From Trichoplax adhaerens (Eukaryota; Animalia; Placozoa), in NCBI RefSeq assembly GCF_000150275.1, contig NW_002060979.1:32612-96611 (forward strand): DNA of 64,000 nt, read 5' to 3'. Below, piece by piece: positions 3,081 through 28,046 of this stretch (its first letter is position 1; the number at the start of each line of letters is the position of its first letter). The notes beneath the pieces were generated by a model. It was not told the origin of the DNA, made no database searches, and saw only the letters and a program-made list of their open reading frames with translations. The translations under genes and the position numbers were made by a program.

Positions 3081-3144
3081 CTATTTTCCTATGACCGTGC
3101 GAACTGCTCGGAAACCAATGCGGGCGTATCGTCGCCAATGATGT

Positions 3145-3179
<35 letters not shown>

Positions 3180-3631
3180 TCTCCACCACTTGATTATATA
3201 AAAAGTAACAATACGCAATCAATTAAATTTATTTACTATCCTAAATTGGTTCTTGTAATTTATTAACACATATTAACGCATAGATTTAACATACGCTCGA
3301 TGAATTATGCTATAAAGGTAATTGCATATTATTACATGATGAAGTTTGCACTCATCAATAACGACAACTGAAAATAGTAAAGTTGAAATAGATTTTTATT
3401 ATTAACCGCAGTACTAACCGCTTTTTTCATTTCTTGTAAATTCTCTTCAAAATCTTCTTGCTTTAATTCTTCGTCGGCCATTCTGGCAATTTCCTTATCC
3501 TCTTTGTTTTTGTTTTCAAAGTTGTTATTCATCATCTCTTGCAATTCCTTCTCAGTAATTTCTTCTTCAGCAGTACAGTATGTAGTAGCCACAAGCAGCA
3601 AAGCTGCGATTAAAATTAACTTCATATTCAT
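3081..3631 (-). CDS. Secreted cationic (antimicrobial-like) peptide precursor 1, 106 aa; coding exons 3631-3419 and 3188-3081
   Basis: Signal-like MNMKLILIAALLLVATTYCTA, then a 50-aa acidic propiece ending EMKKA. Donor GCG|GTTAGT at 3418 and acceptor AATCAAG|TGG at 3189 (phase 0). Last exon WWRRRRRRRRRRRRRHHWRRYARIGFRAVRTVIGK-stop. Confidence 0.9.
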
Positions 3632-3944
3632 GATGCACTGTCTAGATTGATTCAGTTTTAATAACACATAATCGAAGATATTAATAAATAAATACCTTAT
3701 TAAATATTTATACAATACTGAAGTTAATCTTAAATTGAAGTTGTACAGTCAGTGTTAATATCAAAATGAAACACGTTAGAAATTAATAATATCCATATAG
3801 GCAATCCAAATTACAATTTAAAATTGCACACGAGTAAATAATGTTAGTAATCGTCAATATTCACTGAAAGATCACTTTACCTAGATCCACGATGTCGGTT
3901 ATCCTGTTAAAAGCAACACCAGATTAATTACAGAAATGAACTTC

Positions 3945-3951
3945 TTTTATA
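3945..3951 (-). promoter_or_regulatory. TATA box of peptide gene 1, upstream of a short non-coding exon
   Basis: Minus strand GGG-TATAAAA-GAAG. Donor CTAG|GTAAAGT at 3880 and AG acceptors just before the ATG at 3631 define a 5'-UTR intron. Confidence 0.6.
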
Positions 3952-6900
3952 CCCTAGGGAAGCATGAATTATAACAATAGAAATATATATTCGATTATTA
4001 AAACTTGAAGCAATTAAATATAGTTTAAGAGTGGGTTGGATAAGAAACATAATGATCTCAGCAGGGGTTATATGTTATTATGCGGCTGTGCCTATGTTTC
4101 ATATAATGATTGAGAAATCCGGTTTTTTATTATTTAATTGCAAAAGACTGATTTTATGCATTTTTAAAGTAATATGCATTTGATAATAATCTCCGGAGGG
4201 CGATCAAGTTATGGCTGCGGGCATTCAATTACTAGCTATGGTATCAATTTAAGTGCGTTATTACACTAAAGATACATTGTATGAGTATTTTTCAATTATC
4301 TTGATTGTATAATAAATGAATTATTATCTCATTTTTAACTAGTATATATGCTAGGTTAGGCTTACTAAGACAATAATTTTACTAACTAATAAACTAATTT
4401 ACAAAGTCATCAAATTATTGCCAATTTTATAAAGCTGATACAATCGCTTTCACTTAGAATGATTCCTTTACTCAATTACGATACAAAATAATTCGTTAAA
4501 ATTTTAGTTTTTCAGCTCTAGATTATATTTTCTTGCACTTAAACTACGGCAATAGATAAAATATTGGTCTCAGGGGATTAATAAAAATAACACGAAGCAA
4601 CAAGCGTAAATAACTTAAAATGATCATGATACATGAAGGTAACCATATTCTTTAAACCTAGCCAATAAAACGAATAACTACCAGAAAGCCGTTATTGAAT
4701 CATGGATTTTTTTATCCCTTCATGATTATGCGAGTATATTATATTGGATGAATAACGGGCGGTATTATTTTAAGAAAAATAGGAGCCCTACCAGTACACA
4801 AACAAGTCCACAGCTATAAAATGTTGTTGAAATAGTAAGACAAGTTATTGAATTGATAGTGATTACTTCATACACTTAGAAATAATTTAAATCAATACGC
4901 AATTATATTATTATAATTTAGCCACCCATTTTTCAATTAGAATCTATTGACCTTATAAAGTAATCGTTAAAAATAAGTGTAAGTAAAAAAAATTAGTCCA
5001 TAATTTAATAAAGATCATCTTAAAACTGTCCGAGAATAAGTTACTTCATAGACTGAATACAGAAAAACGATATAATAGCAAATTCATGATTATTGTGGCT
5101 GTTCTTTAATCATTAATAATACCGCTATCGCAAATTATTATTTACATTAATGATGATAAACGCTGGTTTTTAAATGCCTCCCTCTGCTTTACTGTTAGAC
5201 TACTACAACATAATGTGATTCAATTACCGATGTATATTATGCTAGTAAATCATAGCATAAGGTAATATTTTTATTCTTTTTTTGTTGATTCCGCCTGGAT
5301 TGAAAAGAAAAAAGAGCTATAATTATTCATCAGTTTCCATCGTGGTTGTAAGCCGGAATGATAAGATGATAGGCACACTATCTGATTTCCTTAATGACTT
5401 GCTATAATTATTTACTCAACATCAAGGACACACAAGTCTATTTTAGGATCGAAATAGTAGCATAATATTATCAAATTATATCTAAGACGATGATCATCAT
5501 TCTCGTATTACATCATTGATGGCAATCAATTCATGCTTGGATTACAGTATGTGTCAATCAACTCAATTATAGTCGATAGCGATAAATGTTGTAATTTACC
5601 CAATTTATGAGTATACATCCATCAATTGATTAATATTGCCCTTTACCATAATAATATATGCATCTATAATATAGAATCATTATCTTGAATGAATGAATAA
5701 ATAGGCGGCAACTTCAATCTAATATAAAAATATAAACTAGTTTGTTAGCTGTAATTTAAATCGCAGAAAACTAATTGGATAAAATTGATGAGAAAGAGGG
5801 CTATGACAATAAAATACTAGTTGTTGTGGTCACCACTTTAATAGTGCTATCATGCATGGTTATACGCTAAGTCAGGAAATGTCGTGAATTTTCTTTAATT
5901 TTCTGCCTATTTCGTTTTGAGTTATTAGCAAGAATGGCTATGATTATATTTTACGTACTCTTAGCATATTATATGTATTTCATATTGTACGCCTTCGATC
6001 GACGACAATCTATTCAATTTTATATAATAGCATACAATTCTTTTACGTCATTTGCATGCCTGTGGCGTTGTTAATAATTCTGCATTTGTTATTTGTAATT
6101 CAATGCAAGAATAAAATGGTATCATTGATGTAAGTTGTTAATCAGAAATAAAGTTCTACACATAATCTATATTTAGTCTAGAATCAGGTAAAGATGAAGC
6201 AGAATGAATGGTATGCATTAATGATTCAAAGAAATCAGACAAAAATAATCTAGTATATTTGTAAATAGAGTTATTTGCTAGAATAAGAAAGCTATTAAAC
6301 TACGCTAATGGAAGCAAAAAGCAACCTGGAATCTGTTCGATTTTTGTACAGTTTACCAGATTGATACAGAATCCGTTATTGAACTGATAGAACTCGTAAT
6401 AAAGTTATCTTGTGCCAAAAAGTTGGAGCGAAAACGTTTATCCAAGAATAGCTTTAAACCACAATTGTGCAAGCCTAAAGAAATCGGCATATAAATTGAA
6501 TGATTGACTTGATGAATAAGACAGCTTTACTGCGTAAAGATTCCGTGATTATTGTCTAACTAATAGGCTAATTGTGGATACAAATTTAATTCCTAAAAAC
6601 TGGCCGATCATAAGAAATCGATGTTATACCCCCTGTTAAGGATTAGTTAATTAAGAAGAAAGTAAATTCAATAAGTAATCTATTTATATCTCAAGTTCAA
6701 ATTACATCTGAAGGGGTCGAATAACGTTAATTGAAATCGTGAAATTGATGATTCAAGAATAACGTCATATCGATTTCCCGAGATTATTCTTTAGAAAGCG
6801 TTTCTGAAAATTTTAATTTCTAGAAACACATTAGTTGTATGAGGAGATGATTTTATTATTCAATATATTCCTCGAAATTGACTATTTAACTTGTAAGAGA

Positions 6901-7099
6901 TGAATCCAGCCACTTATGCATTCTACTGTGCTTCTTAATGCTACTATGACGCTGATTTGTAATCATGAATCGTTGGACTATTCCGCTACCTATAACATTG
7001 TTACCTACTCTGCGAATATTACAGACTATATTCCAAATACAAAATATTCAACAGTTTTTATTAGTCTAGAAATAATCTAATCTTCATCGTGCAATTTCA

Positions 7100-7600
7100 A
7101 TTTTGCCACCTTAATACAGTAATCAAAACGAAAATTACCTAGACACAAATTAGCACTTATCACAAAGGATAATATCGTATAGCAGTCAAAGCGATTGGCA
7201 GTATGAAGTTATTAATTTAAACATCTGAATATGGAAAAATATCATCAACTTGCTACAAAAGGCTTTCCTGTAAGGATAGGCTTTTGCTGCAATCAAAAAC
7301 AAATTTGAATCTATAAAATCTACCAAACACTATTTGAAGTGCCCAACATTAGATTGCTAACTTATGCTTATTCTAACGAAATCTTAGAACAATAAAAGTA
7401 TTATGTAACGCCAACTACGCCTCTAAAAGTTAGCTAAATTATCTTTTAGAAATTGCTTAAGCAAAACCAAACTTCCGTCCTTATTACATTTACAGTGTGA
7501 AATATACCAATCAACACTATCAAATGCGAATGCATGAATACACCCTGTTTTCATGGAAAAAAGAAATTAACTATCCTACGGATTTCACCATTCGGCTCCT
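7100..7600 (+). repeat. Diverged ~500-bp repeat, copy 1 (copy 2 at ~11140-11615)
   Basis: Collinear shared blocks such as aacttgcta..aaaggct, aaacaaatttgaa, ttttagaaa, atgaa.aca.cc.gttttc and ccattcggctc. Confidence 0.65.
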
Positions 7601-10062
7601 TACTTTCATAATAATTATAGAATGGTTTTTACAATAAGAATATGCAATAATTATAAATTTACGTAAATGATGCTAATTGTGAACATTTGTTACTGTATAA
7701 GTGTATATGACTATCCGATGCCGTAACTTACTGTAAGCAACATGTGGTTCCATGTCAATTAAAGTAAAAAAATGATACTGCTTATTTTACCAAGGCCATG
7801 TGTATTTAATAAACCAATCATCATAATTGAAGTTGTTAATTTCTATCTTCTNNNNNNNNNNNNNNNNNNNNNNNNNNNNNNNNNNNNNNNNNNNNNNNNN
7901 NAACCCTTATACGAAAACGGATATGTCGCAAACTAGATTTGAATGTAATAAGAGATCTTGCTCTAGAACACCAGTGACGATAAAGGCTAGTCTAACAAAT
8001 GACTAATTACATTGTTCAATAAACTGAATTACAATCAAATGACTCATTATACTGTATATTATGACTATCATCCATGCCATTGCTATTCACTTTCATTACT
8101 CTAGTGCAAGGATTACTTAAATATAGTATAATCAAAGCCGTCTGTATTCTTGAATCAACTATTGATCAACTAACATTTTCCTGTTGTCTGATCGTGTGAC
8201 AAGTACGCGTACTTGTGATGATAGGTGATCAAATCGAATCTTATACTAGAGTCTATCGATGGGGCAGAAATAGGACAATCATCCATGATTCCTGTTAGGA
8301 ATTGATAGCTGCTTGAAGATTATTGGGATAAACATTTTCTATTACAATATCATGGATAAGGTAAGTAAGTTATGACAGTACTAATATAATTCGAATGGAA
8401 GATGAACCGTAGACATTACCACAACCTGTTTTGAGTATTGCTATAACTAAAAGAAGTAAGGCTGCAATATTGATTGGCAATTTATCCACTAATCATCCCC
8501 AAAATATCGCTAAGCACTGTTAATTACACGTCGATTGGCTTACACTGATAGCATCCCAGTGATTGCTCTGTTGATGCAGAATGTAGACGATATAGATCGA
8601 TATAGATCAAGTGCAGGTGTTGATATCACTACCCTGCGCAATTTGATTTCATTCTCTCATTAGTGGCACTTAATTCTTTCAATTTCTTATATTGAGAAAA
8701 TATAGGATTATGGAAAAGAGGCATTGACAACGACTTCACTCTATCGTGTGTAATTATCCTCGATGTTTCTTGCATCGTAACTTGCAATCAGCCATCGCTG
8801 TCGGTACGGAAGATGAAGAGGCCAACCAGCATCATTATGACAGAGGTAAACAGACAGGTAATATAATTTACTAGATGTAATCTACATTGCAGAAATAGGA
8901 TTATCATCACCATTATACTATTCAAGGTATTAAAGTAGAATTGATAATGTCAATTTTAACTAATTATAGATGGTTAACTTTCCAAGAAGACGGTGAAAAA
9001 CACAAGGAATTACTAAACTATAACTGACTAAAACAATATATTCAACCGTTTTCTCCTAGAAGTAACTCTCGTAATAGACGATAAACTGTCAGCGATTTGA
9101 GAAAAAAGTGCTATACGAAGATCTACAGCATAGTCTTGCTGACTATATAACCAAATTTTTTATCATAGTGATATCATAATGATATATTTCTTGTAAATAG
9201 TACTAGATACCATCTTATTGCCTCATACGAACTTAGAAAAACGGATACTAAATTAATGCAACCCTTTCAGCAATTCAGTAATGAAATCGACGCCTACTGC
9301 GGGTATCATTAGCCGGTTGAAGACTAGTCTCTAGTCTCTACAGCATTGCAGTGTGTTTAACCTAGATTTCTGGGTTTAGTTCAGTGGCTTCTGTTATAAG
9401 TCATTTGTAACAATGATACTCGATAGAGCCTGAGATAGCTGCTGTATCCTATGTTGTATTAGAGTGCCTGCATAGTTTATTATGTCATAATTAGGGAAAG
9501 ATCCTTCAGGCTATTTATAGCTGAAATAGATCATGCAGATGCATATTGCAATAAGGCAATGTGAGCAAACTTAAATGCGGTAAAGGGCGAAGAAATTATA
9601 AAGATTCGTAATAATAAATATACAAAACCTAAGATCGAGGTTGATGTTCTTGTTTTAAAGTACGACGGTAGAAAAGAAAGTAATTATCCTTGATGTGTGA
9701 AACTTGACTAGATAATTTTTGGATCATATTAATTGGGAGATACACAAGTCAGTTTTAATGAACTGGCATGAATAATAATCGGCTTAGATAACGGAAACAG
9801 GCGATTAAGCAGTTTGCTGTTTTGATTATAATTATACTATGCATCGATAAAGTTAATTTTAAATGATTATCACCATAACGATACATTGAAGATCGTCGAT
9901 TTTTTTCTGGCTAAAATGTAGGTATAATACTTAATACAGTCTATTACTTATTTATGCTCATGCAATATCATAAATTAGTGAAGTGATACAAGAAATAATT
10001 TATCTTAACGTGAAAATCAGACAATAAAATTATCTACTACGCTTGCAATTTATAGTTCTGTA

Positions 10063-10758
10063 GATTGACTAGTCAAAAATAAAAAGGAACAACTGGTAAG
10101 ATCGGCGAATTTATAATTATACATAATGAAGATAATCAAGAATGGCTGCTGCCATTAAAATTGGCGGGCGTTGTAACATATATATAACACGTGATTGTAG
10201 ATGCTTTAGCCAATCGCATTAGCGTACATGAGTCTTTAGTTTGTATCGTATTGCGTAGATATAAAAGCTGTTAACTATCCTAAGGCCGCTTGAGGTAGAA
10301 TAAATTAACTCTTAAAAATATCTAGCTAACGGAGCTACATCACTATTATCCTATTTACTAATCTCCCTGGCACGTATCAGAAATATTACAGGATTGACTA
10401 GTCAAAAATAAAAGGAACAACTGGTAAGATCGGCGAATTTATAATTATACATAATGAAGATAAGCAAGGATGGCTACTGCCATTAAAGAATCGTATATAG
10501 CTTTTTCTTCTTTTACCTCTCTGGAAAATTGGCGGGCGTTGTAATATATATAACACGTGATTGTAGATGCTCTAGCCAATCGTATTAGCGTACATGAGTC
10601 ATTAGTTTGTATCGTATTGCGTAGATATAAAAGCTGTTAACTATCCTACGGCCGCTTGAGGTAGAACAAATTAACTCTTAAAAATATCTGGCAAACGGAG
10701 CTACATCACCGTTATCCTATTTACTAATCTCCCTGGCATGTATCAGAAATATTACAGG
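10063..10758 (+). repeat. Recent tandem duplication (10063-10391 and 10392-10758)
   Basis: Near-identical units starting gattgactagtcaaaaat and ending gaaatattacag; the second has an extra ~40-bp segment near 10488-10525. Confidence 0.95.
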
Positions 10759-11139
10759 CGTCATAAATTTTAACGTCAAACTACAATCCATTGAAGCAGG
10801 TATGATAATAGTGTCCGAGATTGAAGTTTAGNNNNNNNNNNNNNNNNNNNNNNNNNNNNNNNNNNNNNNNNNNNNNNNNNNCGAATTCGATACACTCTTA
10901 CAGAGATTAGATTTACGAATTAAACTTTATAACGTTTTCCTTTATCTTCCATATTCAGCACATATGGTAACTTATGGTTTCATATTACTTTCTTATTCGA
11001 TTTTTCAACCGGATAATAATTTACGGTATTCATACGCCAACGAGTGATAATAGAAAGCAATTGCTAATTTTTTTTAATTGTCAAGCTTTAACTTTCTAAG
11101 CAATAGCCAAAGTACCTTTATCCAAAACACAGTGGTTCA

Positions 11140-11615
11140 TTTCTGCTATCTTAATATCACAACCTGAAATGAAAATTGCGACACAAAAAGTCGAACCTGT
11201 TGCAAATGATAGCTTTAAATCACGGCCGAAACAATTAGTAAAATCAATTTTTCGATTGAAATATTTGAATATAGAAGGCACAATGTATGGTTAACTTGCT
11301 ATGAAAGGCTACAACCACAAACAAATTTGAACTTATAGAGCTATCAATCGTTCGTTCCTTAAGCATCAGAGAATAGACAGTTGGCAATTGATCCTTACTC
11401 TAATAAAGTTTTAATACTAAAACATTTTATAACAGCAACTGCACCTCTAATTATAGACAAAATTGATGTTTTAGAAAACTAAGTAAGCAAAAAATTGTTT
11501 TTCTTGCAGTATAAAATATGGCACAGCAATCAATATTATGCAATGTAAATCCATGAACACATCCAGTTTTCTTGTATAAAATAAAATTACTGCACATATT
11601 TAGCCATTCGGCTCA
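11140..11615 (+). repeat. Diverged ~500-bp repeat, copy 2
   Basis: Collinear similarity to 7100-7600. Confidence 0.65.
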
Positions 11616-11799
11616 TTTGTTAATTAAAAGTCATGATATCTCGTCAAATTTGTATTAAATAAAATTGTATACGAAAAACGATATCGTAAGTTAACATTTA
11701 TAGAGAGATCGAAATTAAGCTTGTACTATTCTGCAGCAATATTAAGTATTCAGGAGATTATAACTATTAAAAATTGCCAATGACAGATGTTCTCACAGG

Positions 11800-12465
11800 C
11801 ATTTATCGTGAATCATTTCGATATTTATGCATAGTACTACATAAGCGCATTTCTACGAATCGTATAGGTTTACAAAGTATCTTATGTAATCGATACTATA
11901 TCTGTTACGGCCAAAACCCGAAGTCCGTATCTATTTGGAAAGATACTATAAAGATCTTAGTTAAACGCATGCTACTAAAAAGTAATTTAAGTGATATCAT
12001 GAAGACCAGGAATCATCGTTAGTCATTAACTTGACTAAACTTAATTGTGAATATTTTCCAGTATTTATATACAGTACTATATAAGTGCATTTCCAGAAAT
12101 CTTATCGATTCATGAAGTAGCTTATAGAATCGATACTATGTCTATTTGGAAAGACACGAAAAAGGCCTTATTAAGTACATACAACTAAGAGTAATTTAAG
12201 CGAATCCATAAAGACTAGGAACCATCATTAGTAATTTAGCTTGAATAAACTTTATTTATGAATAATTCCAGTATTTATATAGAGTACTGTATAAGCACAT
12301 TCTTAGGAATCGTATCAATTTGTAAAGTAACTTTATAGAATCGGCACCATATCTATTTGGAAAGATATCACAAAGAGCTTATCTAAGCTCATATGGCTAA
12401 AGAGTAATTCGATATTATAAAGACTAGGAACTATCATTAGTAATTAGCTTGGCTGAACTTGTTGG
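11800..12465 (+). repeat. Degenerate tandem repeat, three units of ~210-240 bp
   Basis: Recurring tctatttggaaaga, aagac.aggaa..atc.ttagt and agtact..ataag blocks. Confidence 0.85.
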
Positions 12466-12877
12466 TATAACAATTATTCCTTGGAAAAATTGATTGGAGA
12501 ACTATCAAAAACTGATTCGAACATTCAAGGCCATGAATTCATCGTATATAAAACGTTTATTTTGTGACCAAAAAAGAAGACTAGGATCAGATACAGGCAA
12601 TATCAGGTACATAACGTAAATAACATATTATTACTGAAAAATTTTAATTTGATATTGCAATTATACACTACTTCGTCTAGCCATGAACTAGCAGTAATAC
12701 TTTACGGATCATTCAGTTTTAAACTACTGTTAACAAGATGCGATAAAATAGCATTTAAATATTCTACATTCTTAGCTTAGCAAAATATAGACAGTATACG
12801 ATGCTTATCTGTCTTGGTTACTCTCTAATTTTAGGAAAATGGACTTTATAAACTAGTTTAATCCTGTAGTGAATATT

Positions 12878-13810
12878 TTATCGTTTTTTGCCATAGACAA
12901 AAATCTGTCGACGACGATAAAAATGGAAGATGATGGGACGTCGAGGTTTCGGAGCAGGGGCTGGAGCACGACGACGGCGGCGGCGGCGACGGCCCCACAA
13001 GGCCTGCTATGGTAAATTTCAAGTTGAAAAGAGTTTTAGTATTTAGATAGATATATTTAATTAAAAAATATAAAATTTTATGGAATATTTGCATTAAAAG
13101 ATTACTCATTTTCACAATTAACAGCGCAAAGTTAACTTGTGAGAAGGAGCTGATTTTAGGATAAGATTGCTTGTAGAAATGTGTTAGTAAATGACTTTGA
13201 ATCCTCAATTATCATTATAGATTATCCTAACTATGAAATGTAAAATACTACCGAATTATGCCGTAACTATGATAAGCTTACTGATAATTATAGACAGTAG
13301 CCTCTATATGTATTATTATTATAAATTGCAAGGTATCTTATGATGAAATTGCTTTAGTAATGCACGATAAATTTACTTTGAATCATATAGTATCATAGTA
13401 GATCATACTACCTATGTAATATAGAATGTCACCGAATAATGCCTTAATTATGATAGATATACTGATAATGATAGATAGCAGTCTCGTCTGCATGGTAGTA
13501 TTATTAAAAGCTACGATGTATAATTATCCTAAATACTCACGGTGCTTTTCTCGGTTAGACCATTCTCAAATTCTGAATCGAATCCTTTATCCATGTCATA
13601 AGACTCATCTATTTCTCCAAGTTCGTTGTATGCATCTTTGTCGGCAATTTCGTACGGGTCTAGTTTATGGACATCCTTTTCAGCAATATCGTAATAGCCT
13701 GGTCCATGCCCACCCTTATTGTCATTATCGAGCTAAGAATTGTCATCTTCAGTGGCGTAAGCAAATGCAAAGAGAAATAGACACGCAATGAGAGCCAATT
13801 TAGTATTCAT
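12878..13810 (-). CDS. Secreted cationic peptide precursor 2, 131 codons; exons 13810-13541 and 13003-12878; in-frame TAG at codon 26 (recent pseudogene, null allele, sequence error or readthrough)
   Basis: MNTKLALIACLFLFAFAYATEDDNS*LDNDNKGGHGPGYYDIAEKDVHKLDPYEIADKDAYNELGEIDESYDMDKGFDSEFENGLTEKST. Donor ACC|GTGAGT at 13540 and acceptor TAGCAG|GCC (phase 0). Last exon ALWGRRRRRRRRAPAPAPKPRRPIIFHFYRRRQIFVYGKKR-stop. Putative 5'-UTR intron (donor GAG|GTACGT at 14004) and AATAAA at 12561-12556. Confidence 0.8.
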
Positions 13811-14589
13811 TTTCTTGCAATGATCCTTCTGTATAGTCAATGAAATAAAGATTAATTTTTAGTACTGGATAGACTGTAGTATTCGAATTGAAATTGAAAT
13901 GATGAATATACGGCATCTTCGAATATAGTATAGATTGAATGATTAATACATATTATTACGACTATAACCTTGATTTTTAAAAAACGCTTAATGTTAATAC
14001 GTACCTCAACAACTTTTAATTTTCTAAATTAATTCTTGAGATAAATTCTGCGATCCTTCCTGAATTTCCAAAGTAAAGCAATCTCGTCTGCATGGTAGTA
14101 TTATTATAAGCTACGATGTATAATTATAATTAACCATATAGCAGTAAGACAACGATAACTGGATACAATCAATGTGACGTCGTCATTGTTGAACGTAGGT
14201 TGTGCTAATCATAAAATTCAATGCCTATAGATACTCAACCAATATGGACATTTACGCATGAAAAGATACAAAGACAATATCAAATACTTCGATAATTTCG
14301 ACGAAACACAATTCTTCAACCATGAAAATCTATGGTCGGACAAGCAGTTAATCCTATATGAACTTCTATCTAGTTTGAATATTTATAGCCCCCAAACACT
14401 ACAGCTACAAATCACTCTACCATTCCCTTACTTCGATATATGGGACATGCAATGGAATCTTCAACACTCTCAACTCATCATCAGAGGTAAATGGGATTAC
14501 TGCTTAGTAACCCCAGTGAAAAAGACATGATATTTGCATGAAATGTGAAGCTAATCTTGTATCTTGTACCCAGTGCAATTTAACGAGAG

Positions 14590-15500
14590 TGTCAATAAAC
14601 TAAGTTAATATTACTTCCATAATCAATGAAGATGATTGATGTGTATAGTGTACAGATGGATAAAGTATACCCCCAATGTCAGTAAAACCAATACCCAAAA
14701 ATAAATAAAGCAAAACATGATTAAAAGTAGTGTAGTCTATGTCTAGTCTATGGTTAATGCTATTGCTGAGTTAGTTTAATGTCTATTACAAATCGCAGTC
14801 AAAGAGGGACTTGAAAGAGAAAACGAAAACATCCCTAACAAAACATTGGTAAAATAGGAGGAGAACATAAAGATCAACATAGGGATGGAGAAAATGGATT
14901 GCATAATTGCAGCCTATCTATCATTAAGCATCCCATCTAGTCTAAAGCAAATATTGATGTCAGTCTTGTAATACTGTAGATGGCGATCTCTTCAGCTATT
15001 AATAAACTAAATCAACATCACTTCTATCTATCAAGATGATGGATGTGTGTACTGCACAGATGGATAAAGTATATCCCTAATGTCAGTAAAACCAATACCA
15101 AAAAATAAGTAAAGCAAAACACCATTGCATATTCGTCCATGGGGCGAATGCAATGGTTGAGTTGGTTCAATTCCAATTATAAATGGTAGTGAAAGAGAGA
15201 TTTGAAGAGAAAACGAAAACATTTGTAAAAAGATTCAGGATTAAGATGAAGGTAAAGTAAAATAGGATGAGAAAATAAAAATAGGGATAAAGAAAATGAT
15301 TTGCGAAATTGCAGTCGATCATAAAGCAAACCCCCATAAGTCTGTTTAACCAATACACAAAAATAAATCAAAACAACATTAATAGTATTGCAATCGATGC
15401 AATTGTGCAGTTAGTCCAATGTTTATTGCAAATTGCAGTAAAAGACGGACTTGAAAGAGAAACAATCTCACCAAGTTCTTGGTCAAAATAACATGAGAAG
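14590..15500. repeat. Degenerate local repeats, A-rich on the + strand
   Basis: 14628-14718 matches 15033-15121; the gcagt.aaaga.ggacttgaaagagaaa block recurs near 14796, 15186 and 15435. Confidence 0.7.
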
Positions 15501-15980
15501 ATAAAATAGTCAATGTATTTGGTACAACATTTCTGCTAGCAAAGGCGATCATGACTGGAAGGGATATTGCCAACAGAAAATCGTCGTACCTTGTTGTCCA
15601 TGTTGTCTTCCACTTTTTCCCGACCCCAAAGGTGAGATTGCCTGCTTTCATTCTGTTTCTCACCTTGCTATCCACAGTTTACGAGGTAAAATAGCGATTT
15701 CAGTTAGAGCCAAGAAAGGTTGATGGCGAACATGCAGTAAGCAGCGTGCCTGTGGGATACTTTCTCAGTCCAATTCAGGTTACTCGTTTGATATCTTGCT
15801 TATAATATTGTCCGCTGTAGACTCAATCCCTACTTCTATAGGGTGACAAGCTATTTTGCACAGTAGCTTGCAGCGCCGACTCTCTACTTGGTCTTCCTCT
15901 ACTTCTACTGCCATCTACACGTGAAATGGCAATCAACCATCAAACATCTTTTTTTCTCACATTCTTTTTCCATACTACAG

Positions 15981-16368
15981 ATTTCTCTCTTATACTTATT
16001 AATCTGTGCTTTTGACCGATATTGTTGGGTGTTAGCATTGTCATCGTGCTTAGCAGGTAAGTCTTTCAACCAGTTAAAGCAATCTTAATTAATCGATATC
16101 ATTTTAAACGCAAACCCTAACATTATTGCAATAATATAATCGTCCCTTTATCGCCATTAGACCTATGGTTGACATTTTGGGTTGTGAACTGAATTTCTCT
16201 TATACTTGTCAATCTGTGTCTTTTAATAGATATTGCTGGGTGTTAGCATTCTCATCTAGTTTAATGAATAGGTAAGTCCTTCAACAAGTGACAATAGCCT
16301 TAATTAATCGCTATCATTTTAAGCGTCGAATGGGTTGGTAACCCTGACATTATTCCAATAATCGTCCC
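15981..16368 (+). repeat. Diverged tandem duplication (~15981-16146 and ~16193-16368)
   Basis: Shared ctcttatactt..aatctgtg, gggtgttagcatt, aggtaagtc, ttaattaatcg.tatcatttt and aatcgtccc. Confidence 0.8.
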
Positions 16369-16451
16369 TCCATCATAATATGTAAGTTACATAATTTGCT
16401 GGATGAACTACATCGTTGAATAAATAGTCAACAAATACACCTACTACATAC

Positions 16452-18189
16452 TTTCCTTAGAGCATAACGATGTTTATTTGCAACCATGCCATATCTTCGC
16501 TGATATGGACCTTCCTGCTTTTAGCAAAGAAACGTACTAGAAAATATATAAAGTCAAAATTTCGGTACTGATATGTCATTCAATTATAATATAAGACAGT
16601 GAATCATCTAATAGATAGTCTGTTCAACAATTCCACCATTCTTGCTGCTCACCACCCCCTTCCCCAAATAAAATTACTGGCTTTGCATCCTATTCAGTAT
16701 CCATTAGATTCGTTTTATCATCAGGCAGCTGATATCTGATTCGATTAGAACATCTTATTTGTAAATAGGGTTAACACCTTATTGATACTCAGTAACTTTA
16801 ATGTAAAGCGCTTGAGGGCGCCTTTTTTTACTCAAGCGATTGTCAGTTTAATTTATATTTGATAGCAGAAAATTGGCTCTTGTTTAAACAATAGTAAACT
16901 TGTTAATTAAGATGGTAAATAAATTCATTGTATGTAAGGGATAATTCATTACCGACCGTCCAGCTCTAATTTTCTCATTCGTAGTTCTTATTGCAAAATA
17001 TCGTAAACTAAACCGATGATATGTAGTTTTCATGTTTATAGATGAAGTCAAATGTCTTAATCCTTGACTGGAAGTTTCTTGCTAGAGATTTATTGTGCAC
17101 TGCCTATCAAGATTACCATTTTGGCTTTGCGCCATTGCAAATTGGTCTGGTTTACTATTTTCTATTGTATTTGATACTTGATGATGATTTAGTGACGTTG
17201 TGTACTTTTATGCCATAATGACTATAAAATTAATGGCAGAAAGCGACTTGCAGAGCTTTAACGCTGCATGCACTCTATCAGTATATTTTAATTTCAAGAA
17301 CGGTAATGAAACCCTAATGATTTCACTTTTATACGCAATTGAAACCATTGCCTAATTGAAATAGATTATTAGATTGATATTACTGTACTATATCCGATAA
17401 GTAGATCTTCGATATGAATACTATTGAAGTAAATTTCTTCTTGACTCACATTCAAACTAAACTCTTATATCGTCCATTGTATTAATTATATACAAACTAG
17501 AATCCAAATTTGTTGCAGATACTCTGCAGCCTTTGATGCAATTCTCTGACCGCTTTCGCTTTCTTGTTATATATGGAGCAATTACATATATACTGTAAAG
17601 TAGTATTATATATAGAATGGTTAATTATGTAATTATCATTTTAAGCTAATCTTACACCTTATATGGATAATCATTTAGCTAAACCATAAGTTAAGTAGTC
17701 TATCAAATGTATAAATACCTTCATAAATTTATTAATAAACGATTCTCAATTAAACAAACACCGTTTACCACGAACTTAATAACTATAGTCCAAATTTATT
17801 GCAGATACTCTACCGCCTTTGATGAGATTCTCTGACCGCTTCTGTAGTACCTTATGATATTAATCCACCAAAACCAAATAACTTGGAAAGGTTGAACCCA
17901 AATCTCAATTGTAATGTTAAGCTTAACTAAACTCTTAACTTGGTCTGGTGCTACAGCGATACCATTCATTGCTACTAGTTGCAACGGCATTGCTGTAACA
18001 TTTGCATAGTTAAGCATAGGCTACAGAATCAGGATAATTGAAAGAGCAACTTTTTAGAGTTAGTTAAACTTATGTCTTACTCATACAACATGAATTTCTG
18101 ATCTACCTAATAGCGTCTACTAAGAAATACGTTGATGGGAATTATCCGCTTTAGATTGGCATTAGGTCATAAATGCAAGTGTACAGTAT
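16452..18189 (+). pseudogene. Duplicated, internally deleted remnant of the UGT pseudogene locus (copy of ~24393-27333)
   Basis: 16452-17043 matches 24393-25003 (end of exon 1 plus intron), then jumps to sequence matching ~26517 onward. Nearly all of exon 2 is absent. Confidence 0.9.
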
Positions 18190-19949: not shown

Positions 19950-22900
19950 TTATGAAATTTTCTCTTTAGGAGCTTTGGCGCAGCAGAGGGCTTTTACGCC
20001 TCTCCAAATCAACTGCAAAATTTTAACCATAATCGCAAGTAACACTAATAAAACTGCATAAACGTCTATTAAATGCAGTTCGTACCATCGCAGATTATAC
20101 TCCTCAGTTCGCAAATATTCGCCACCATCACAATTTAATGCATATTCCATCCAATCAGCAGCTTCTTCCACAGGCGTTCTACCATTCGGTCTATTTTGAA
20201 TTAGTTTGGAAACTTGCATAGAACTATTTATGATGTCTTGTCGGGTAGTAACATTCATAATTGCATAATACAGATCGCTTTGTGTCATTTCTTTAACATT
20301 GAGTGTTACACCTACGTGTTTAGATGATATTTTTGTTGCGTGAATTACTTGATCACCAGCAACTGGAATCCCAACCATAGGTACACCATGATATGCACCT
20401 TCAAGAAGGCTATTCATACCACAATGTGTTATAAATGCCTTGGTGTTTGGATGGCCAAGAATATCGTTTTGTGGTACCCATTTCACAATTTTAATATTGG
20501 GAGCGATGTTATCAGGAAGTTCCTCTGTATTTTTCCAAATGAAATTATATGGTAACTGACCAAAGGTATCAAATAACATAGTGATATTGGTCACATACTT
20601 TAAGGCAGTTACGACTGAGCCAAACGAGACTAGCACGGTTCCTTTAGGATTGCTCGCCATGAACTGCTGTAAATCATCAGGCAATGGTTTTGCGGGCTTA
20701 GGAAGTATAGGTCCAACTACTTTAGAGGTCGGGGTAATCGGGCGAGAATAATCAATAGCAAAGTCTGTATTTACAATAAGGAATGATGATCGCCTTTCAG
20801 TAAACAAAGGAGTCGAATTAATACCTAGATTGCTTGTGTTCATCGCATTATACATCTGGGGCAAAATAACTAAATGCGCTACAGCATTTGCAACGTAGTA
20901 GATGATGACATTGATCGTTCGCTGATATAAGGTCATTTTATTGCTAGCTGCAAATCCAAGCTGGGGAATATAAGCCAGTGGGTTCGGAATATGGAATGGT
21001 CCTGAGATAAATGGATCACCAAATCCAACCGGAGCAACGTCAACAACGACTTTGATGTCAGCAAAATCAGCTATAATCTGACAAATTGGGCTAATAATAT
21101 CGCACAGAGCTCCATCTTTCAAATTGAAATGAAGCAAATTGTAAATATTTCATTATAAAGCAAACCGTAAGATCACATTAACTTAACGTATGAAATGATA
21201 TTCAATTGAAAGAATTAGAAAAGATTCACTAACTGCACATGATACTATTGCTTTGGATGAGAAGACGCCTATCTATTAGCTAGCTAGTGATTGCCAACCT
21301 GAATGCATTTATCTGTTTTATGCCAGCTAATAATTCCCTACGTTGTAAGTTTAATTCTAATACCGCAAAATGATGACAAGACAGCGGTAATATTCTATTG
21401 AAAAATGAAATCTTACTGTAATTCTAGGGGTGGTACTTGCTATGCGTTTGAAGTTATTTTTAATAAAATTAGTAATGAATGTTTTATGCTTGTTTATGAT
21501 TAACAATCAATATTAACTTTCATTTAGGTAGATAGCCTTATGGATTCCAATACAAATGAATATGCAACCAGCAGGCCATAGCATGTGTACACGTATTCAT
21601 AAGAGAGTGTTTCAAGCTAGTTAGCCATACTCAGGTAAAAGCTGTGATGATCTAGGGCTTCTTTATCAGCGTTTTAACTTGAGATAACTTTTAAAGATAT
21701 TAGTAATGAATATTTTATTCCTGTTTATGATTAACATACAGTATTCATTCTCGTTTAGGTAGATACTCTTATATATTCCAACACAGGGCTATATGCAAAC
21801 AGTAGACTGTAACATCCATACATGTATTTATGCGAGAGTGCTTTAAACTAGTTAGCCATACTCAATTATAAACTGTGAAGATGTAGGGCTTCCCTATGCT
21901 TTTTATTCACGTGCTACTTGTCTACGTCGAACTACAAAAAATAACTACTATGCAATTGATACATCTTATGTGTCAACGCTTACTATGTAAGAATAATCTG
22001 TAATTGAAATTAATAACTATTTCTTCATTAAAGCCACTTTATTTTTTTACCCTTGTAATCGATTAAAGTGAGAAAAACGATCTTTTCACCTATTAGCAGC
22101 AGATAACAGTATAAAGTTTACGCAACATTTAAGGTCAGATTGACTAGTCTACGAGTATTTCAATGTTATGTTAGTATGTCGTACGTATACTTAAGGAGCT
22201 ATCCTCTCTATCTAATGACGTTGATCTAATGCTATTAAATGTTAAATTTACCGTCGCTGAATATTGATAAGCATAACAAGTCCTATAAGGTAGAAATAAT
22301 GCTGATATTCCCTATCAAACTGTTAGCCACAAGGACAGCATTAAAGGCTCTTGCTATAAACGCCTTTCAATTTATGAGATCTATAGAATACAGTAAACAT
22401 TTCTGCTCGCCTGTATTATCTAATTAAAGGGCGATCATGGTGAAAGAAAATGTAACGATTTAAATGAAGTTTAGATCAATTTCTCTTGCAAGAATTTACT
22501 GATACCTTTCTGTAGATTCATGTATACGAGAATAGAAACGTTCCACTACTGTATGTGATTAAAACGATACAAAACTGCTGATGTTGCCCCATCGGTAATC
22601 AACTCATTTAAATTAGGGGTTATTATTTTAAGTTTAAATTGACTTATACAATCACTTGTCAATTCGATTACGAGCTTCCTCTTGTGGAAAGTGTTTACGC
22701 TACAGGTATAACTGATTTAAAAACGATTGTATGCTGACGATTGAATAAGAGATTTACCGAATTTTTGATCTCGTATTTCTTCCAGTAGTTTCCTTTCATG
22801 ACTAAAAGCGGCCAAATCAAGGTTGCCGTACTTATGGCAGGGCAAGAGCAAGTTATCATTATTCTTTAAAGCCTCAGCAATACAATCAGCCAAATCATGT

Positions 22901-23151
22901 TGTGTCACAGGAGTTTTATAATATTTCACCGTAAACTTCTTTTGAGCAAGAAATTTCACTGCTGATGCTGCCACCATAACAACAGTATGACCTCGTTGAT
23001 GTAATTCATCTCCAATGGCTGCCACAACATGGGCATGGCTATGATAATATTGGGCAATTAACAATATTTTCGAAGAACGGACTTGACGTGGGATAGCAGT
23101 TAAACTAATCACAATCAAGGCGACAAGCATCCATGATAATTTCCCTACCAT
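19950..23151 (-). CDS. UDP-glycosyltransferase (animal ER-type, GT1), 519 aa; exons 23151-22758 and 21115-19950
   Basis: Signal peptide, catalytic-His motif HSHAH, phase-1 splice giving QKFDGALCD, UGT signature WVPQNDILGHPNTKAFITHCGMNSLLEGAYHGVPMVGIPVAGDQ, C-terminal TM and KxKxx end (KEKIS). Confidence 0.95.
21456..21892 (+). repeat. Diverged ~230-bp tandem duplication in the UGT intron
   Basis: Shared attagtaatgaat, tgtttatgattaaca, tttaggtagata, ctagttagccatactca and tagggctt. Confidence 0.85.
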
Positions 23152-24112: not shown

Positions 24113-26532
24113 ATGGCAACCAAAAAAAGCGTATAGAGGTTACTTGGAATCTTGGCTTTAGCTTTGATAGCTCTTCTTCGCCATTGCCAATCAGCCAAGA
24201 TACTCCAGGTAGCTCAATATTATCATAGTCATGCTCATGTGGTAGCAACGATTGGTGATGAATTACATCGACGAGTCCATAATGTGATGATAGTAGTATC
24301 TTCAGCGGCTCAATTTCGGCCTCCTAAAAAATATATAATTCAATATTATCAAACTCCAGTAACGCAGCAACACTTAGCAAATTGTACGGCCATTTCCTTA
24401 GAGAATAATGATGTTTATTTGCAACCATGCCATATCTACGCTGGTATGGACCTTCCTGCTTTTAGCAAAGAAAGAAACTTACTAGAAAATATAAAAAGTC
24501 AAAATTTCGGTAATGATATGTCATTCAATTATAATATGAGGTAGTGAATCATCTAATAGATAGTCTGTTCAACAATTCCACCATTCTTGCTGCTCACCAC
24601 CCTTCCCCCAAATAGAATTACTGACTTTGCATCCTATTCAGTATCCAATAGATTCGTTTTATCATCAGGCAGTTGATATCTGATTCGATTAGAACATCTT
24701 ATTGCAAATAGGGTTAACACCTTATTGATACTCAGTAACTTTAATGTAAAGCGCTTATTTTTATTTTAAAGAGCTTGAGAACGCCTTTTTTTACTCAAGC
24801 GATTGCCAGTTTAATGTATTTTTGATACCAAAAAATTGGCTCTTGTTTAAACAATAGTAAACCCCTCAATTAATATGGTAAATGACTTCATTGTATTCAA
24901 GGGATAATTCATTACAGTCCAGCTCTGATTTTTTCATTCCTAGTTCTTATTCCAAAATATCGTAAACTAAACCGATGATATGTAGTTTCCATGTTTATAG
25001 ATGCTAAAGTTATCTTAATAAGACAGCATTGAATGAAGATTATGGTCATATTAAAAGCTTTACGGACGAGTAGTTAGAATAGCAACAGTAGGATATATAA
25101 GTACAAAGTTCGCTCATGCAATTATACAATAATAAGATTCTCACGTTAGCAGCTACTCCTACTTAGTAATAAAATTATAATTTGCGTCAAATGTTTTATC
25201 GTTATTTACAAGTGATTTGATACTTTTACGAGTAAATTTTGATGGGCAAGATAGTATAATAGACTAAATTTAAAATTAAAAAATTAAATTTAAATCTATT
25301 AAAATGTTTGTTTAGCAGTCAAGTAACAAGACATTCATCATTAATATTTTATTAGCAGACGGAGTTCTATACGACATCAGCAGCCCAGCCCTATTTGCCA
25401 AATTATTACTGAAGCAGCAAACATTAAGGTCTTGGTTCCTGTTGCTGCATTTGGATTTACCGATCTACTCGTAACTGGATTCTACCATATACCTAATCCG
25501 TTGGCTTATGTTCCACAACTTGGACTCACATTTACCAACAAAATGACATTACATCAGCGTATTATTAATAACGTCATTGTTTCATATCTTACATCGACAT
25601 TAGTCCATTCATTTTTCTACCTTACATGTTTGCAGAAGTAAAGAAAACTAGTTTAGGCATTGATAGCATTCCCGATTTAGTGTATAGTCGAGCCTTATTT
25701 CTTTTAGTCAATACAGACTTTGCTATGGATTATCCTCGTTCAATTACACCGACTACCAAAGTAGTCGGCCCTATACTCCCTAAACCTGCTCAATCATTAC
25801 CTTCTGATTTACAACAATTTGCATCGAAGAATCCTAACGGCACAGAGATTGTCTCTTTTGGTACGGTAGTAACCGCATTAAAGTATGTCAGTAATGTTGC
25901 AATGCTTTTTAATACTTTTGGCCGGTTACCGTATAATGTTATTTGGAAATATACGGAGGATATTCCGCAAAGTATTGCTTCAAATATTAAAATTATTCAG
26001 TGGTTGCCACAGAATGATCTCCTTAGTCACTTAAATACCAAAGTACTTGTTACGCATTGTGGTTTAAATAGCATTCTCGAAGGAGCTTATCATGGTGTAC
26101 CTATGATCGGTATTCCAGATGTCGGTGATCAAGCCAGTCATGGGCCTAAAATAGCAGCTAAAAATGTTGGAATAGTATTAAATGTAAAAGGAATGACGCA
26201 AGATGATCTGTATTATGCAATTATCAACGTTACAACACGACAAGATATTTTAGAAAAGAACTCTTAGAATTTCGAAATTAATTCAAAATAGACCGAATAG
26301 TAGAACGCCTGCTGAAGAAGCTAGCGATTGGATGGAATATGCGCTAAATTGCAATGGCGGTGAATATTTACGTACGGAAGAGTATAATATACCATGGCAT
26401 CAATTCTATTTAGTAGATGTATTTGCTTTAGTTTTAGTTTTCCTTGTCATTGCTGTTCAATTAATATGTTTAATATGGTAGAAAATAACAAAGTTATGTA
26501 GTGGTAATGGGGCTAAAGTTAAAATGTCTTAA
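24113..26532 (+). pseudogene. UGT pseudogene, head-to-head paralogue; exons 24113-24509 and 25359-26532
   Basis: Same intron position. In-frame TAG at 24134-24136; frameshifts near 25385, ~25560-25625 and ~26265; TAG at 26479-26481. Retains the UGT signature and a KVKMS-stop end. Confidence 0.9.
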
Positions 26533-28046
26533 TCCTTGACTGGAAATTTCTTGCTAGAGATTTATTGTGCACTGCCTATCAAGATTACCATTTTGACTTT
26601 GCGCCATTGCAAATTGGTCTACTTTACTATTTTCTATTGTATTTTCTACTTGATGATAATTTAGTGTACTTTTATGCCATAATGGCAATAAAATTAATGG
26701 CTGAAAGCGACTTGCAGAGTTTAACGCTGCATGCACTCTATCAGTATATTTTAATTTCAAGTACGGTAATGAAAGCCTAATAATTTCACTTTTATACGCA
26801 ACTGAAACCATTGCCAATATTAGATTGATATTACTATACTATATCCGATAAGTAGATCTTCGATATGAATACTGTTGGAAGTAAATTGAAAATTGTTGAA
26901 GTAAATTGAAAATGAACCCTATTAAACTAGAATCCAAATTTGTTGCAGATACTCTACCGCCTTTGATGAGATTCTCTGACCGCTTTCATAGTACCTTATG
27001 ATATTAATCCACCAAAACCAAATAACTTGGAAAGGTTGAACCCAAATCTCAATTGTAATGTTAAGCTTAACTAAACTCTTAACTTTGTCTTGTGCTACAG
27101 CGATGCCATTCATTACTGCTAGTTGCAACGGCATTGCTGTAACATTTGCATAGCTAAGCATCGGTTACAGAATCAGGATTATTGAAAGAGCAACTTTTTA
27201 GAGTTATTTAAACTTATGTCGTACTCATACAACATGAATTTCTGATCTACCTAATAGCGTCTACTAAGAAATATGTTGATAGGAATTATTCGCTTTAGAT
27301 TGGCATTAGGTCATAAATGCAAGTGTTCAGTATTGCATTGCAAGGAGCCGTAATTTTACTGCAAGATTCTCAAATTACGATATTATGTCCTATTAGGAAT
27401 AAAATAGTGTTGTCAACAATCTCATTGTGCTAGAGTCTTATTGTAAACGCCCGAAAATTATAACTTGTCAATTGCAATGTTGTCTTCGTTGACTTACGTA
27501 AACCTTCTACGAATATTTTACGCTTTCATAACTATTAGTTGAATCAAGTTCCTGTTATGTTTGTTATCAAACATTTTTTATGCCTACTGCTGGGCCGTAG
27601 TCACTAGTTAAGTCTATCAGATTTAGAATAAGTGCAGCTACAGGCGACCTATAACGCGCTATAAAACGCACTATATGGGTACAAACCATACTTATCCAGT
27701 TTCCGCCCCATAAAATTATGGATAACTATGCTGCAGAGTGCAACACAATTCAAAGATTACGGTAGTAGTAACATTCTTTCACGATTTAAAGCAATTTACA
27801 ATTAGAGAGACATTGTGCTATAGGCCTTTTAATGACCTTAATTCGCATCGAAATTAAAAAGTATAATCTAAAAAGAGTACATATGAGTACAGTTTTGATT
27901 TATTATGTTCTGAAAAGACCTTGTTTAAATTGATAATTTTTAAAGTCGATCTTCTTTCCCGTAGGTCAATTTATATCCAGAGTCTATGTGGAAAATGTGA
28001 TCGAAATTAGTAGTAAATGCTAATGTTATGTTGCAATTAATGGGAT

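Follow-up and report, generated by a model that had tools for sequence, protein, structure and literature searches.

A 64,000-nt stretch of the Trichoplax adhaerens genome (NCBI RefSeq assembly GCF_000150275.1, contig NW_002060979.1, positions 32,612 to 96,611; referred to below as the window) carries two genes on its minus strand, here called gene A and gene B, whose predicted products are small secreted precursors with a run of arginines. A sequence-only reading of this DNA had taken them to be a hidden two-gene family of secreted poly-arginine peptides, and the question raised by the locus is whether the genes are in fact new and whether they stand alone. Neither part of that description held. 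Judged by its sequence, gene A is the gene for the published precursor of the antibacterial peptide trichoplaxin-2, unannotated in the collections searched yet not undiscovered, and gene B is already annotated as TRIADDRAFT_62241. Both are very probably members of one large family of small secreted prepropeptides, placozoan-wide and with a common gene structure. The secreted peptides of placozoans, which belong to the simplest animals, are relevant to how innate immunity and peptide signalling arose.

Gene A and the trichoplaxin-2 precursor

The layout that had been described for the two genes, namely a signal peptide, an acidic propiece, a phase-0 intron at the charge switch, a Trp-polyArg exon and an amidation-type end of Gly followed by Lys/Arg, is present in the DNA as proposed (Table 1). 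The reading frame of gene A is intact. Its exon 2 codes for a signal peptide of approximately 20 residues followed by an Asp/Glu-rich acidic propiece with a net charge of about -10, which offsets only part of the +19 of the cationic part, and the phase-0 intron sits at the switch from acidic to cationic sequence. An intron in the 5'-untranslated region (UTR) is predicted as well, because the corresponding intron of gene B was confirmed by RNA and AG sites lie 7-21 nt before the ATG in 7 paralogues.

Trichoplaxin-2 was described as a 20-residue amidated peptide from the C-terminus of the precursor encoded by expressed sequence tag (EST) GR418172.1 (Juretic et al. 2020, Molecules 25:3526, PMC7436000). 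The precursor was reported to have a signal peptide, an acidic propeptide and 13 consecutive Arg before two His, with 'residues 71-86' ahead of the cut (PMC7436000). The 20-residue tail of gene A is identical to this peptide, and the R13 run, the signal, the acidic propeptide and the numbering all agree. The gene A model has 71+35 codons, and 71 plus WW and R13 leads to residue 86, in agreement with the published numbering (PMC7436000); residues 71-86 of the EST-derived precursor are the last propiece residue through WW and R13. Since the published cDNA has a single frame and the genomic frame meets a stop inside the intron, positions 3418-3189 must be removed.

The trichoplaxin-2 paper dealt with cDNA only, and gives no gene structure, locus or family (PMC7436000). 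Protein searches were carried out exon by exon, and the joined proteins discussed here are public models; the public proteins that matched the window were those of Trichoplax adhaerens. No gene A model was found in the protein collections searched, either by a word-index search with the pre-pro exon (the exon coding for signal and propiece) or by a profile search, and exact look-ups of two genomic read-through open reading frames of gene A gave no record.

Synthetic trichoplaxin-2 and an analogue longer by one Arg had minimum inhibitory concentrations of 0.25-2 uM against bacteria (PMC7436000). The helical hydrophobic moment of the gene A tail was 0.71 (P=0.007 vs shuffles) and that of the gene B tail 0.14, and the gene B tail is rich in Pro and aromatic residues, unlike that of gene A. 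The peptides of the two genes would therefore be expected to act differently in detail.

Gene B and its nonsense codon

The pre-pro exon of gene B matched the family profile with E=5.6e-22. In this assembly gene B does not have an intact reading frame, as an in-frame TAG, not mentioned in the earlier description of the two genes, interrupts it at codon 26. The orthologue in Trichoplax sp. H2, TrispH2_007441, is intact, and the locus is 99.7% identical. Over 2.4 kb the H1 and H2 sequences of gene B differ by six substitutions, one of which is the nonsense change, and by one 6-nt indel. This indel changes the length of the Arg run, a CGN repeat that varies quickly in length, giving R8 in H1 and R10 in H2. 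The public model TRIADDRAFT_62241 (160 amino acids, 'predicted protein') carries exactly the last exon seen in the window, and has evidently swapped the signal exon for other upstream exons to avoid the stop.

The RNA evidence consisted of assembled contigs of sequencing runs, including X19 and X20, which were compared with gene B under a rule of 31 nt for the shorter side of a joint. A 60-nt X19 contig with a depth of 148 joins 13541 to 13006 with GT..AG ends on the minus strand, its shorter side of 29 nt being just under this rule. The X19 contigs cover exactly 13541-13826 and 13006-12325, and an intron-retaining X19 contig over gene B had a several-fold lower depth. A junction at 13541/13003 had been proposed from sequence; the spliced joint was found, in a paralogue-type RNA contig, but with its acceptor at 13006 and not at 13003. 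The acceptor used is the first AG of a tandem tag/cag (NAGNAG), and 13003 is an alternative site 3 nt downstream. Use of 13006 adds one Gln and keeps phase 0, and the public models also begin this exon with Gln. The 5'UTR intron that had been suggested for gene B was confirmed at 14004-13829 by an RNA contig. The RNA contigs over gene B carry paralogue-type letters, with approximately 37 differences per 2.1 kb including those at positions 12994, 12998 and 13735.

By these comparisons gene B is the reference-genome member of the subfamily of AMP4 (Ta 64402), with one nonsense codon that either disables it or is a misreading in this assembly, and it is intact in H2; its DNA is 97-98% identical to that of AMP4, with which its protein shares a 90% cluster. 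That gene B is functional, and that the TAG is a Sanger-era assembly error or a rare allele, seems rather improbable to us. The TAG is a single substitution in an otherwise intact gene, which differs from H2 only by the few changes given above, and every contig over 13735 has the Lys codon, but these contigs have the paralogue-type differences and so do not come from the gene B copy. The Joint Genome Institute (JGI) model of gene B, moreover, had its signal exon replaced and is labelled 'predicted', in contrast to the paralogues, which are labelled 'expressed'.

One X20 RNA contig skips the 290 nt from 12607 to 12896. The ends of this skip, shifted by 2 nt, are canonical for an intron on the plus strand, which would read AG/GTACAT ... 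TTTTTTGCCATAG/ and would overlap the last codons and 3'UTR of gene B. The skip may come from an antisense spliced transcript of the repeat unit in which gene B lies, or from a deleted paralogue.

The gene family in Trichoplax and other placozoans

The family profile was built from an alignment (A1) of 8 pre-pro exons. In place of the two genes that had been proposed as a family, it gave 37 matches in the T. adhaerens genome (105.6 Mb, 1414 contigs, 33.5% G+C), two of them within the window. The matches cluster on contigs C1411 (approximately 6.59-6.63, 4.73-4.75, 7.40-7.42 and 8.14-8.15 Mb), C1410 (0.62 and 4.75-4.78 Mb) and C1399. A downstream in-phase Trp-polyArg exon was present at no fewer than 28 of the 30 loci examined. 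This last exon opens with (Gln/Phe/Ala-x) Trp or Trp-Trp followed by the Arg run, and in many paralogues it has a strict period of three Arg and three or four aromatic/aliphatic residues. Nearly all of these exons have Gly-Lys(-Lys) at or near the C-terminus, sometimes with two to four residues after it, and the retention of Gly-Lys even when internal argues for a processing signal. The plan of the family is a short non-coding exon, an exon for the signal (of the MN-x-K-L type) and acidic propiece, a phase-0 intron, and a last exon that opens with one or two Trp and an Arg run and, in nearly all members, has a Gly with one to three Lys/Arg after it at or close to the C-terminus.

Genes A and B share 60% of the signal and 16% of the propiece, which makes them distant members of the family and not a pair. 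Two genes in tandem on C1399 are among the closest relatives of gene A: TRIADDRAFT_60631, and TRIADDRAFT_64292 with a model that extends into the intron. The same exon plan, with clearly orthologous cationic exons, was found in placozoan-like AT-rich contigs (L063-L067) from ENA and Logan assemblies. Compared between lineages, identity is 55-87% in the cationic exon and only 25-53% in the propiece, and three divergent orthologues all have an Arg run of R10. In comparisons of paralogues the signal shows the highest identity (35-75%) and the propiece the lowest (14-36%). The propiece is the fastest-evolving part, and the idea of a conserved carrier with a hypervariable effector exon, as put forward from the window alone, is corrected by these values.

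At loci L004 and L040-L045 (C1411 at 4.745 and 6.59-6.62 Mb; C1410 at 0.619 Mb) the last exon is a near-perfect repeat of three Arg and three aromatic/aliphatic residues, with up to approximately 12 units and a net charge of up to +41. The precursors from these loci may give rise to many tiny peptides or to a single, very long polycation. Locus L006 (G000:C1276:2481-2702) is near-identical to a member on C1364; the homology ends within the intron, there is no cationic exon, and the public model P0006 runs on into the intron. The locus is either a truncated copy or an artefact of the assembly. A word-index protein search with the exon of a C1410 paralogue gave no match. A paralogue ending in Tyr-Tyr-Gly-Arg was considered as a YYamide precursor and rejected, as the published YYamide and RWamide peptides differ in sequence.

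Comparison with known peptide systems

Two members of the family have been described by Mayorova et al. (2025, PLoS One, PMC12013895), who reported AMP3 (Ta 60631) and AMP4 (Ta 64402) as 'arminin-like' putative antimicrobial peptides (AMPs). Both are expressed in ventral epithelial secretory cells near the rim; AMP4, which is secreted and has an amidation signal, was located on the ventral side in a narrow band 10-40 um away from the rim (PMC12013895). Five genes are named in that paper, and gene A and the window copy of gene B are not among them (PMC12013895). The arminin-like host-defence role suggested for the window had thus been published independently for the paralogues AMP3 and AMP4, and the tail of gene A is antibacterial (PMC7436000, PMC12013895). 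One of the paralogues nearest to gene A is AMP3: the two share the WW-polyArg start, and their signals are 65% identical. Genes A and B both show the AMP3/AMP4-type layout, with a signal, an acidic N-terminal part, a basic C-terminal part and a Gly placed for predicted amidation. AMP1 and AMP2 (Ta 55945 and Ta 56030) were not recovered by the family profile.

Hydra arminins share this layout, with a signal, an anionic N-terminal part and a cationic C-terminal peptide with a Gly for amidation, and are highly expressed in digestive-type epithelium (as summarised in PMC12013895). They are without the Trp-polyArg leader, unlike the Trichoplax family. A profile search of a protein library of 1.84 billion representatives, in which the presence of arminins was unverified, detected no arminin homology: it gave 14 hits, of which the named ones were Trichoplax and the rest placozoan-like.

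Cathelicidins, including the Pro/Arg-rich PR-39 and Bac5/7, have a conserved pre-pro part and a cationic peptide on its own exon, and frog dermaseptin-type precursors also consist of a conserved pre-pro part followed by a cationic peptide. The cathelin domain is absent from the Trichoplax family, and the Pro/Arg stretch of gene B recalls Pro-rich AMPs in resemblance only. Dermaseptin-type precursors have a conserved pre-pro region that ends in Lys-Arg and a hypervariable mature peptide; in Trichoplax the boundary has no Lys-Arg, and conservation is higher in the cationic exon than in the propiece. Homology to arminins, to cathelicidins or to dermaseptin precursors found no support in the profile search, and the likeness to arminins is one of function and layout.

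The core of these results is already published. The literature searched did not contain the link between trichoplaxin-2 and AMP3/AMP4, the size of the family, the shared exon plan, the conservation across lineages or the nonsense codon of gene B. The value of the present analysis is mostly curatorial: a published drug-lead peptide, trichoplaxin-2, is anchored to an unannotated gene, and it is placed with the 'arminin-like' AMP3 and AMP4 in one large family with a common exon plan. Single-cell atlases that are built on the current gene models would miss gene A, and would mis-assign reads among the near-identical AMP4 copies.

Mode of action and possible functions

In the proposed mode of action, the precursor would enter the secretory pathway, with the acidic propiece partly offsetting the cationic part during packaging, and endoproteolysis would release the cationic peptide. 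A carboxypeptidase would trim the terminal Lys/Arg, and an amidating enzyme would convert the exposed Gly to a C-terminal amide. The Trp/Arg-rich peptide would be released at the epithelial surface, where it would attack microbial or possibly prey membranes. Genes with a PHM domain (of the amidating enzyme type) and with a proprotein-convertase P-domain are present in the genome. A 100-kb stretch of contig C1411 of this genome (G000, 2.81-2.91 Mb) matches the C-terminal domain of peptide-amidating monooxygenase many times over, which points to an array of PHM-like genes in tandem.

We propose tentatively, and with less than even confidence in the proposal as a whole, that trichoplaxin-2, AMP3, AMP4 and approximately thirty further loci form one placozoan-wide family with a fixed three-exon plan, in which the mature amidated peptide keeps the conserved Trp-polyArg leader as a natural module for penetrating cells or seeking membranes, and that these peptides are the main secreted effector arsenal of placozoans, used for defence or prey lysis. 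Several points weigh against the main reading, of one gene family with the mode of action given above. The cut point of trichoplaxin-2 was called subjective by its authors (PMC7436000). Propiece and cationic charge were uncorrelated across 8 members (rho -0.23, not significant), so that the idea of the propiece as a 'shield' has only loose support. The RNA contigs carry paralogue variants, and expression is therefore shown for AMP4-type paralogues and not for the window copy. The number of gene-B-type copies may be inflated by assembly redundancy. Finally, Arg runs are excellent convertase sites, and for this reason the secreted product may no longer contain the polyArg part.

A different view, which we regard as unlikely, is that the Arg run is mainly a long convertase cleavage site and spacer, that cleavage falls inside the run or behind it and is followed by trimming of the basic residues, and that only the C-terminal piece is released, possibly for neuropeptide-like signalling and not as an antimicrobial. 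The products would be a 19-residue amide from gene A, or many tri- to hexapeptides from the RRR-periodic paralogues. Arg runs match the convertase consensus R-x-K/R-R, for which convertase P-domain genes exist in the genome, and the strict period of RRR and 3-4 aromatic/aliphatic residues in many paralogues resembles multi-copy neuropeptide precursors, but the repeat units of these paralogues are without a Gly for amidation. Many small secreted peptides are used by Trichoplax for behaviour, and the published active peptide, trichoplaxin-2, does not include the Arg run (PMC7436000). On the other hand, the Trp or Trp-Trp right before the run is conserved across paralogues and lineages, and would be wasted on the end of a propiece; the R10 length is kept in the three divergent orthologues. 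Combinations of Trp and Arg are typical of membrane-active peptides. The Trp-polyArg leader may survive processing, with the conservation of Trp and of run length arguing for its survival and the convertase-site character of the run against it. A role in feeding and not in defence, in which the ventral (digestive) epithelium would release the peptides so that algae or bacteria taken as prey are lysed in external digestion, appears quite unlikely to us. The expression of AMP3 and AMP4 in ventral epithelial cells near the rim is on the feeding surface (PMC12013895), and trichoplaxin-2 is membrane-active and cytotoxic to eukaryotic cells too (PMC7436000), but the AMP-expressing cells overlap little with digestive-enzyme cells and are peripheral to the main digestive zone (PMC12013895).

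Table 1. Positions in the window of genes A and B, the repeat unit of gene B and the assembly gaps
Feature	Position	Strand	Basis
Gene A, TATA-like box TATAAAAG, putative, ~30 nt 5' of the presumed transcription start	3944..3951	-	sequence reading
Gene A, predicted 5'UTR intron (GT..AG), ends 10 nt before ATG	3642..3880	-	sequence and analogy
Gene A, coding sequence	3631-3419 + 3188-3081	-	sequence
Gene A, exon 2 coding part, 71 codons, ATG at 3631	3419..3631	-	sequence; profile E=1.2e-24
Gene A, phase-0 intron, 230 nt, donor GTTAGT, acceptor AG ending 3189	3189..3418	-	sequence; implied by EST-derived precursor
Gene A, last coding exon	3081..3188	-	sequence
Gene A, WW	3183-3188	-	sequence
Gene A, R13 (CGN repeat)	3144-3182	-	sequence
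Gene A, 20-residue trichoplaxin-2 sequence including terminal GK	3084-3143	-	identical to Table 1 of PMC7436000
Gene A, stop	3081-3083	-	sequence
Gene B, 5' non-coding exon 1 (minimum extent)	14005..14061	-	RNA contig, run X20, record 18
Gene B, 5'UTR intron, 176 nt	13829..14004	-	joint 14005->13828 in 1048-nt X20 RNA contig
Gene B, exon 2, ATG at 13809, signal and acidic propiece	13541..13828	-	sequence; X19 RNA contig covers exactly 13541-13826
Gene B, in-frame TAG, codon 26	13733..13735	-	sequence; AAG (Lys) in H2 orthologue, all paralogues and every read contig
Gene B, phase-0 intron, 534 nt	13007..13540	-	joint 13541->13006, X19 RNA contig
Gene B, last coding exon: Gln, ALWG, R8 (12968-12991), Pro-rich stretch, aromatic/Arg tail, GKKR-stop	12878..13006	-	sequence; P0017 = TRIADDRAFT_62241
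2.1-kb repeat unit holding gene B	11979..14082	-	read-contig flanks diverge exactly at 11979 and 14082
Assembly gap, intergenic	7852..7901	.	H2 contig has 175 nt, flanks collinear
Assembly gap, intergenic	10832..10881	.	collinearity with H2 contig ends here

The 2.1-kb repeat unit and the surrounding region

At least 8 further copies of the 2.1-kb unit were found in the genome, on C1150, C1238, C1272, C1291, C1375, C1382 and C1411. They are 97-98% identical to the window copy and approximately 99% identical to one another, and all intact copies have AAG (Lys) at the site of the TAG. Many of the copies adjoin N runs on small scaffolds. The public proteins of the gene B type form one 90% cluster, with TRIADDRAFT_64402 on C1382 and TRIADDRAFT_64427 on C1150, both of them 'expressed protein'. 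The unit was considered as a mobile element and this was rejected: it has sharp edges, but no target duplication or terminal repeats were seen. An estimate of copy number from contig depths was rejected, as the flanks give contradictory values.

A 51-nt direct repeat (14077-14127 and 13477-13527, 96% identical) places a copy of the beginning of the unit's second intron immediately upstream of the unit itself. This hints at an origin of the gene B locus through recombination of two tandem units. Degenerate tandem repeats of approximately 210 nt, 72-78% identical (11802-12460), lie in the 3' part of the unit, which RNA contigs cover as 3'UTR down to 12325.

Both N gaps in Table 1 lie outside genes A and B. 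The H2 contig NOWV01000097.1 follows the window collinearly over 18548-10884, with 99.7% identity, and does so again from 8010 to 5135, where the H2 contig ends. In place of window positions 8011-10831 it has an unrelated 778 nt, and there is no counterpart of 8011-10831 at that place in H2. This segment, which lies between the two gaps, is an insertion specific to H1 or else a misplaced contig. Within it lies a repeat of approximately 370 nt (10063-10392 and 10392-10758). Next to gene B the H2 annotation has two genes, one of 151 residues with no Pfam hit and one for a UDP-glucuronosyltransferase (window approximately 15380-18016 and 24393-27333, and approximately 19950-23150, respectively). 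The 151-residue gene has a second copy, 89-95% identical, further along the window.

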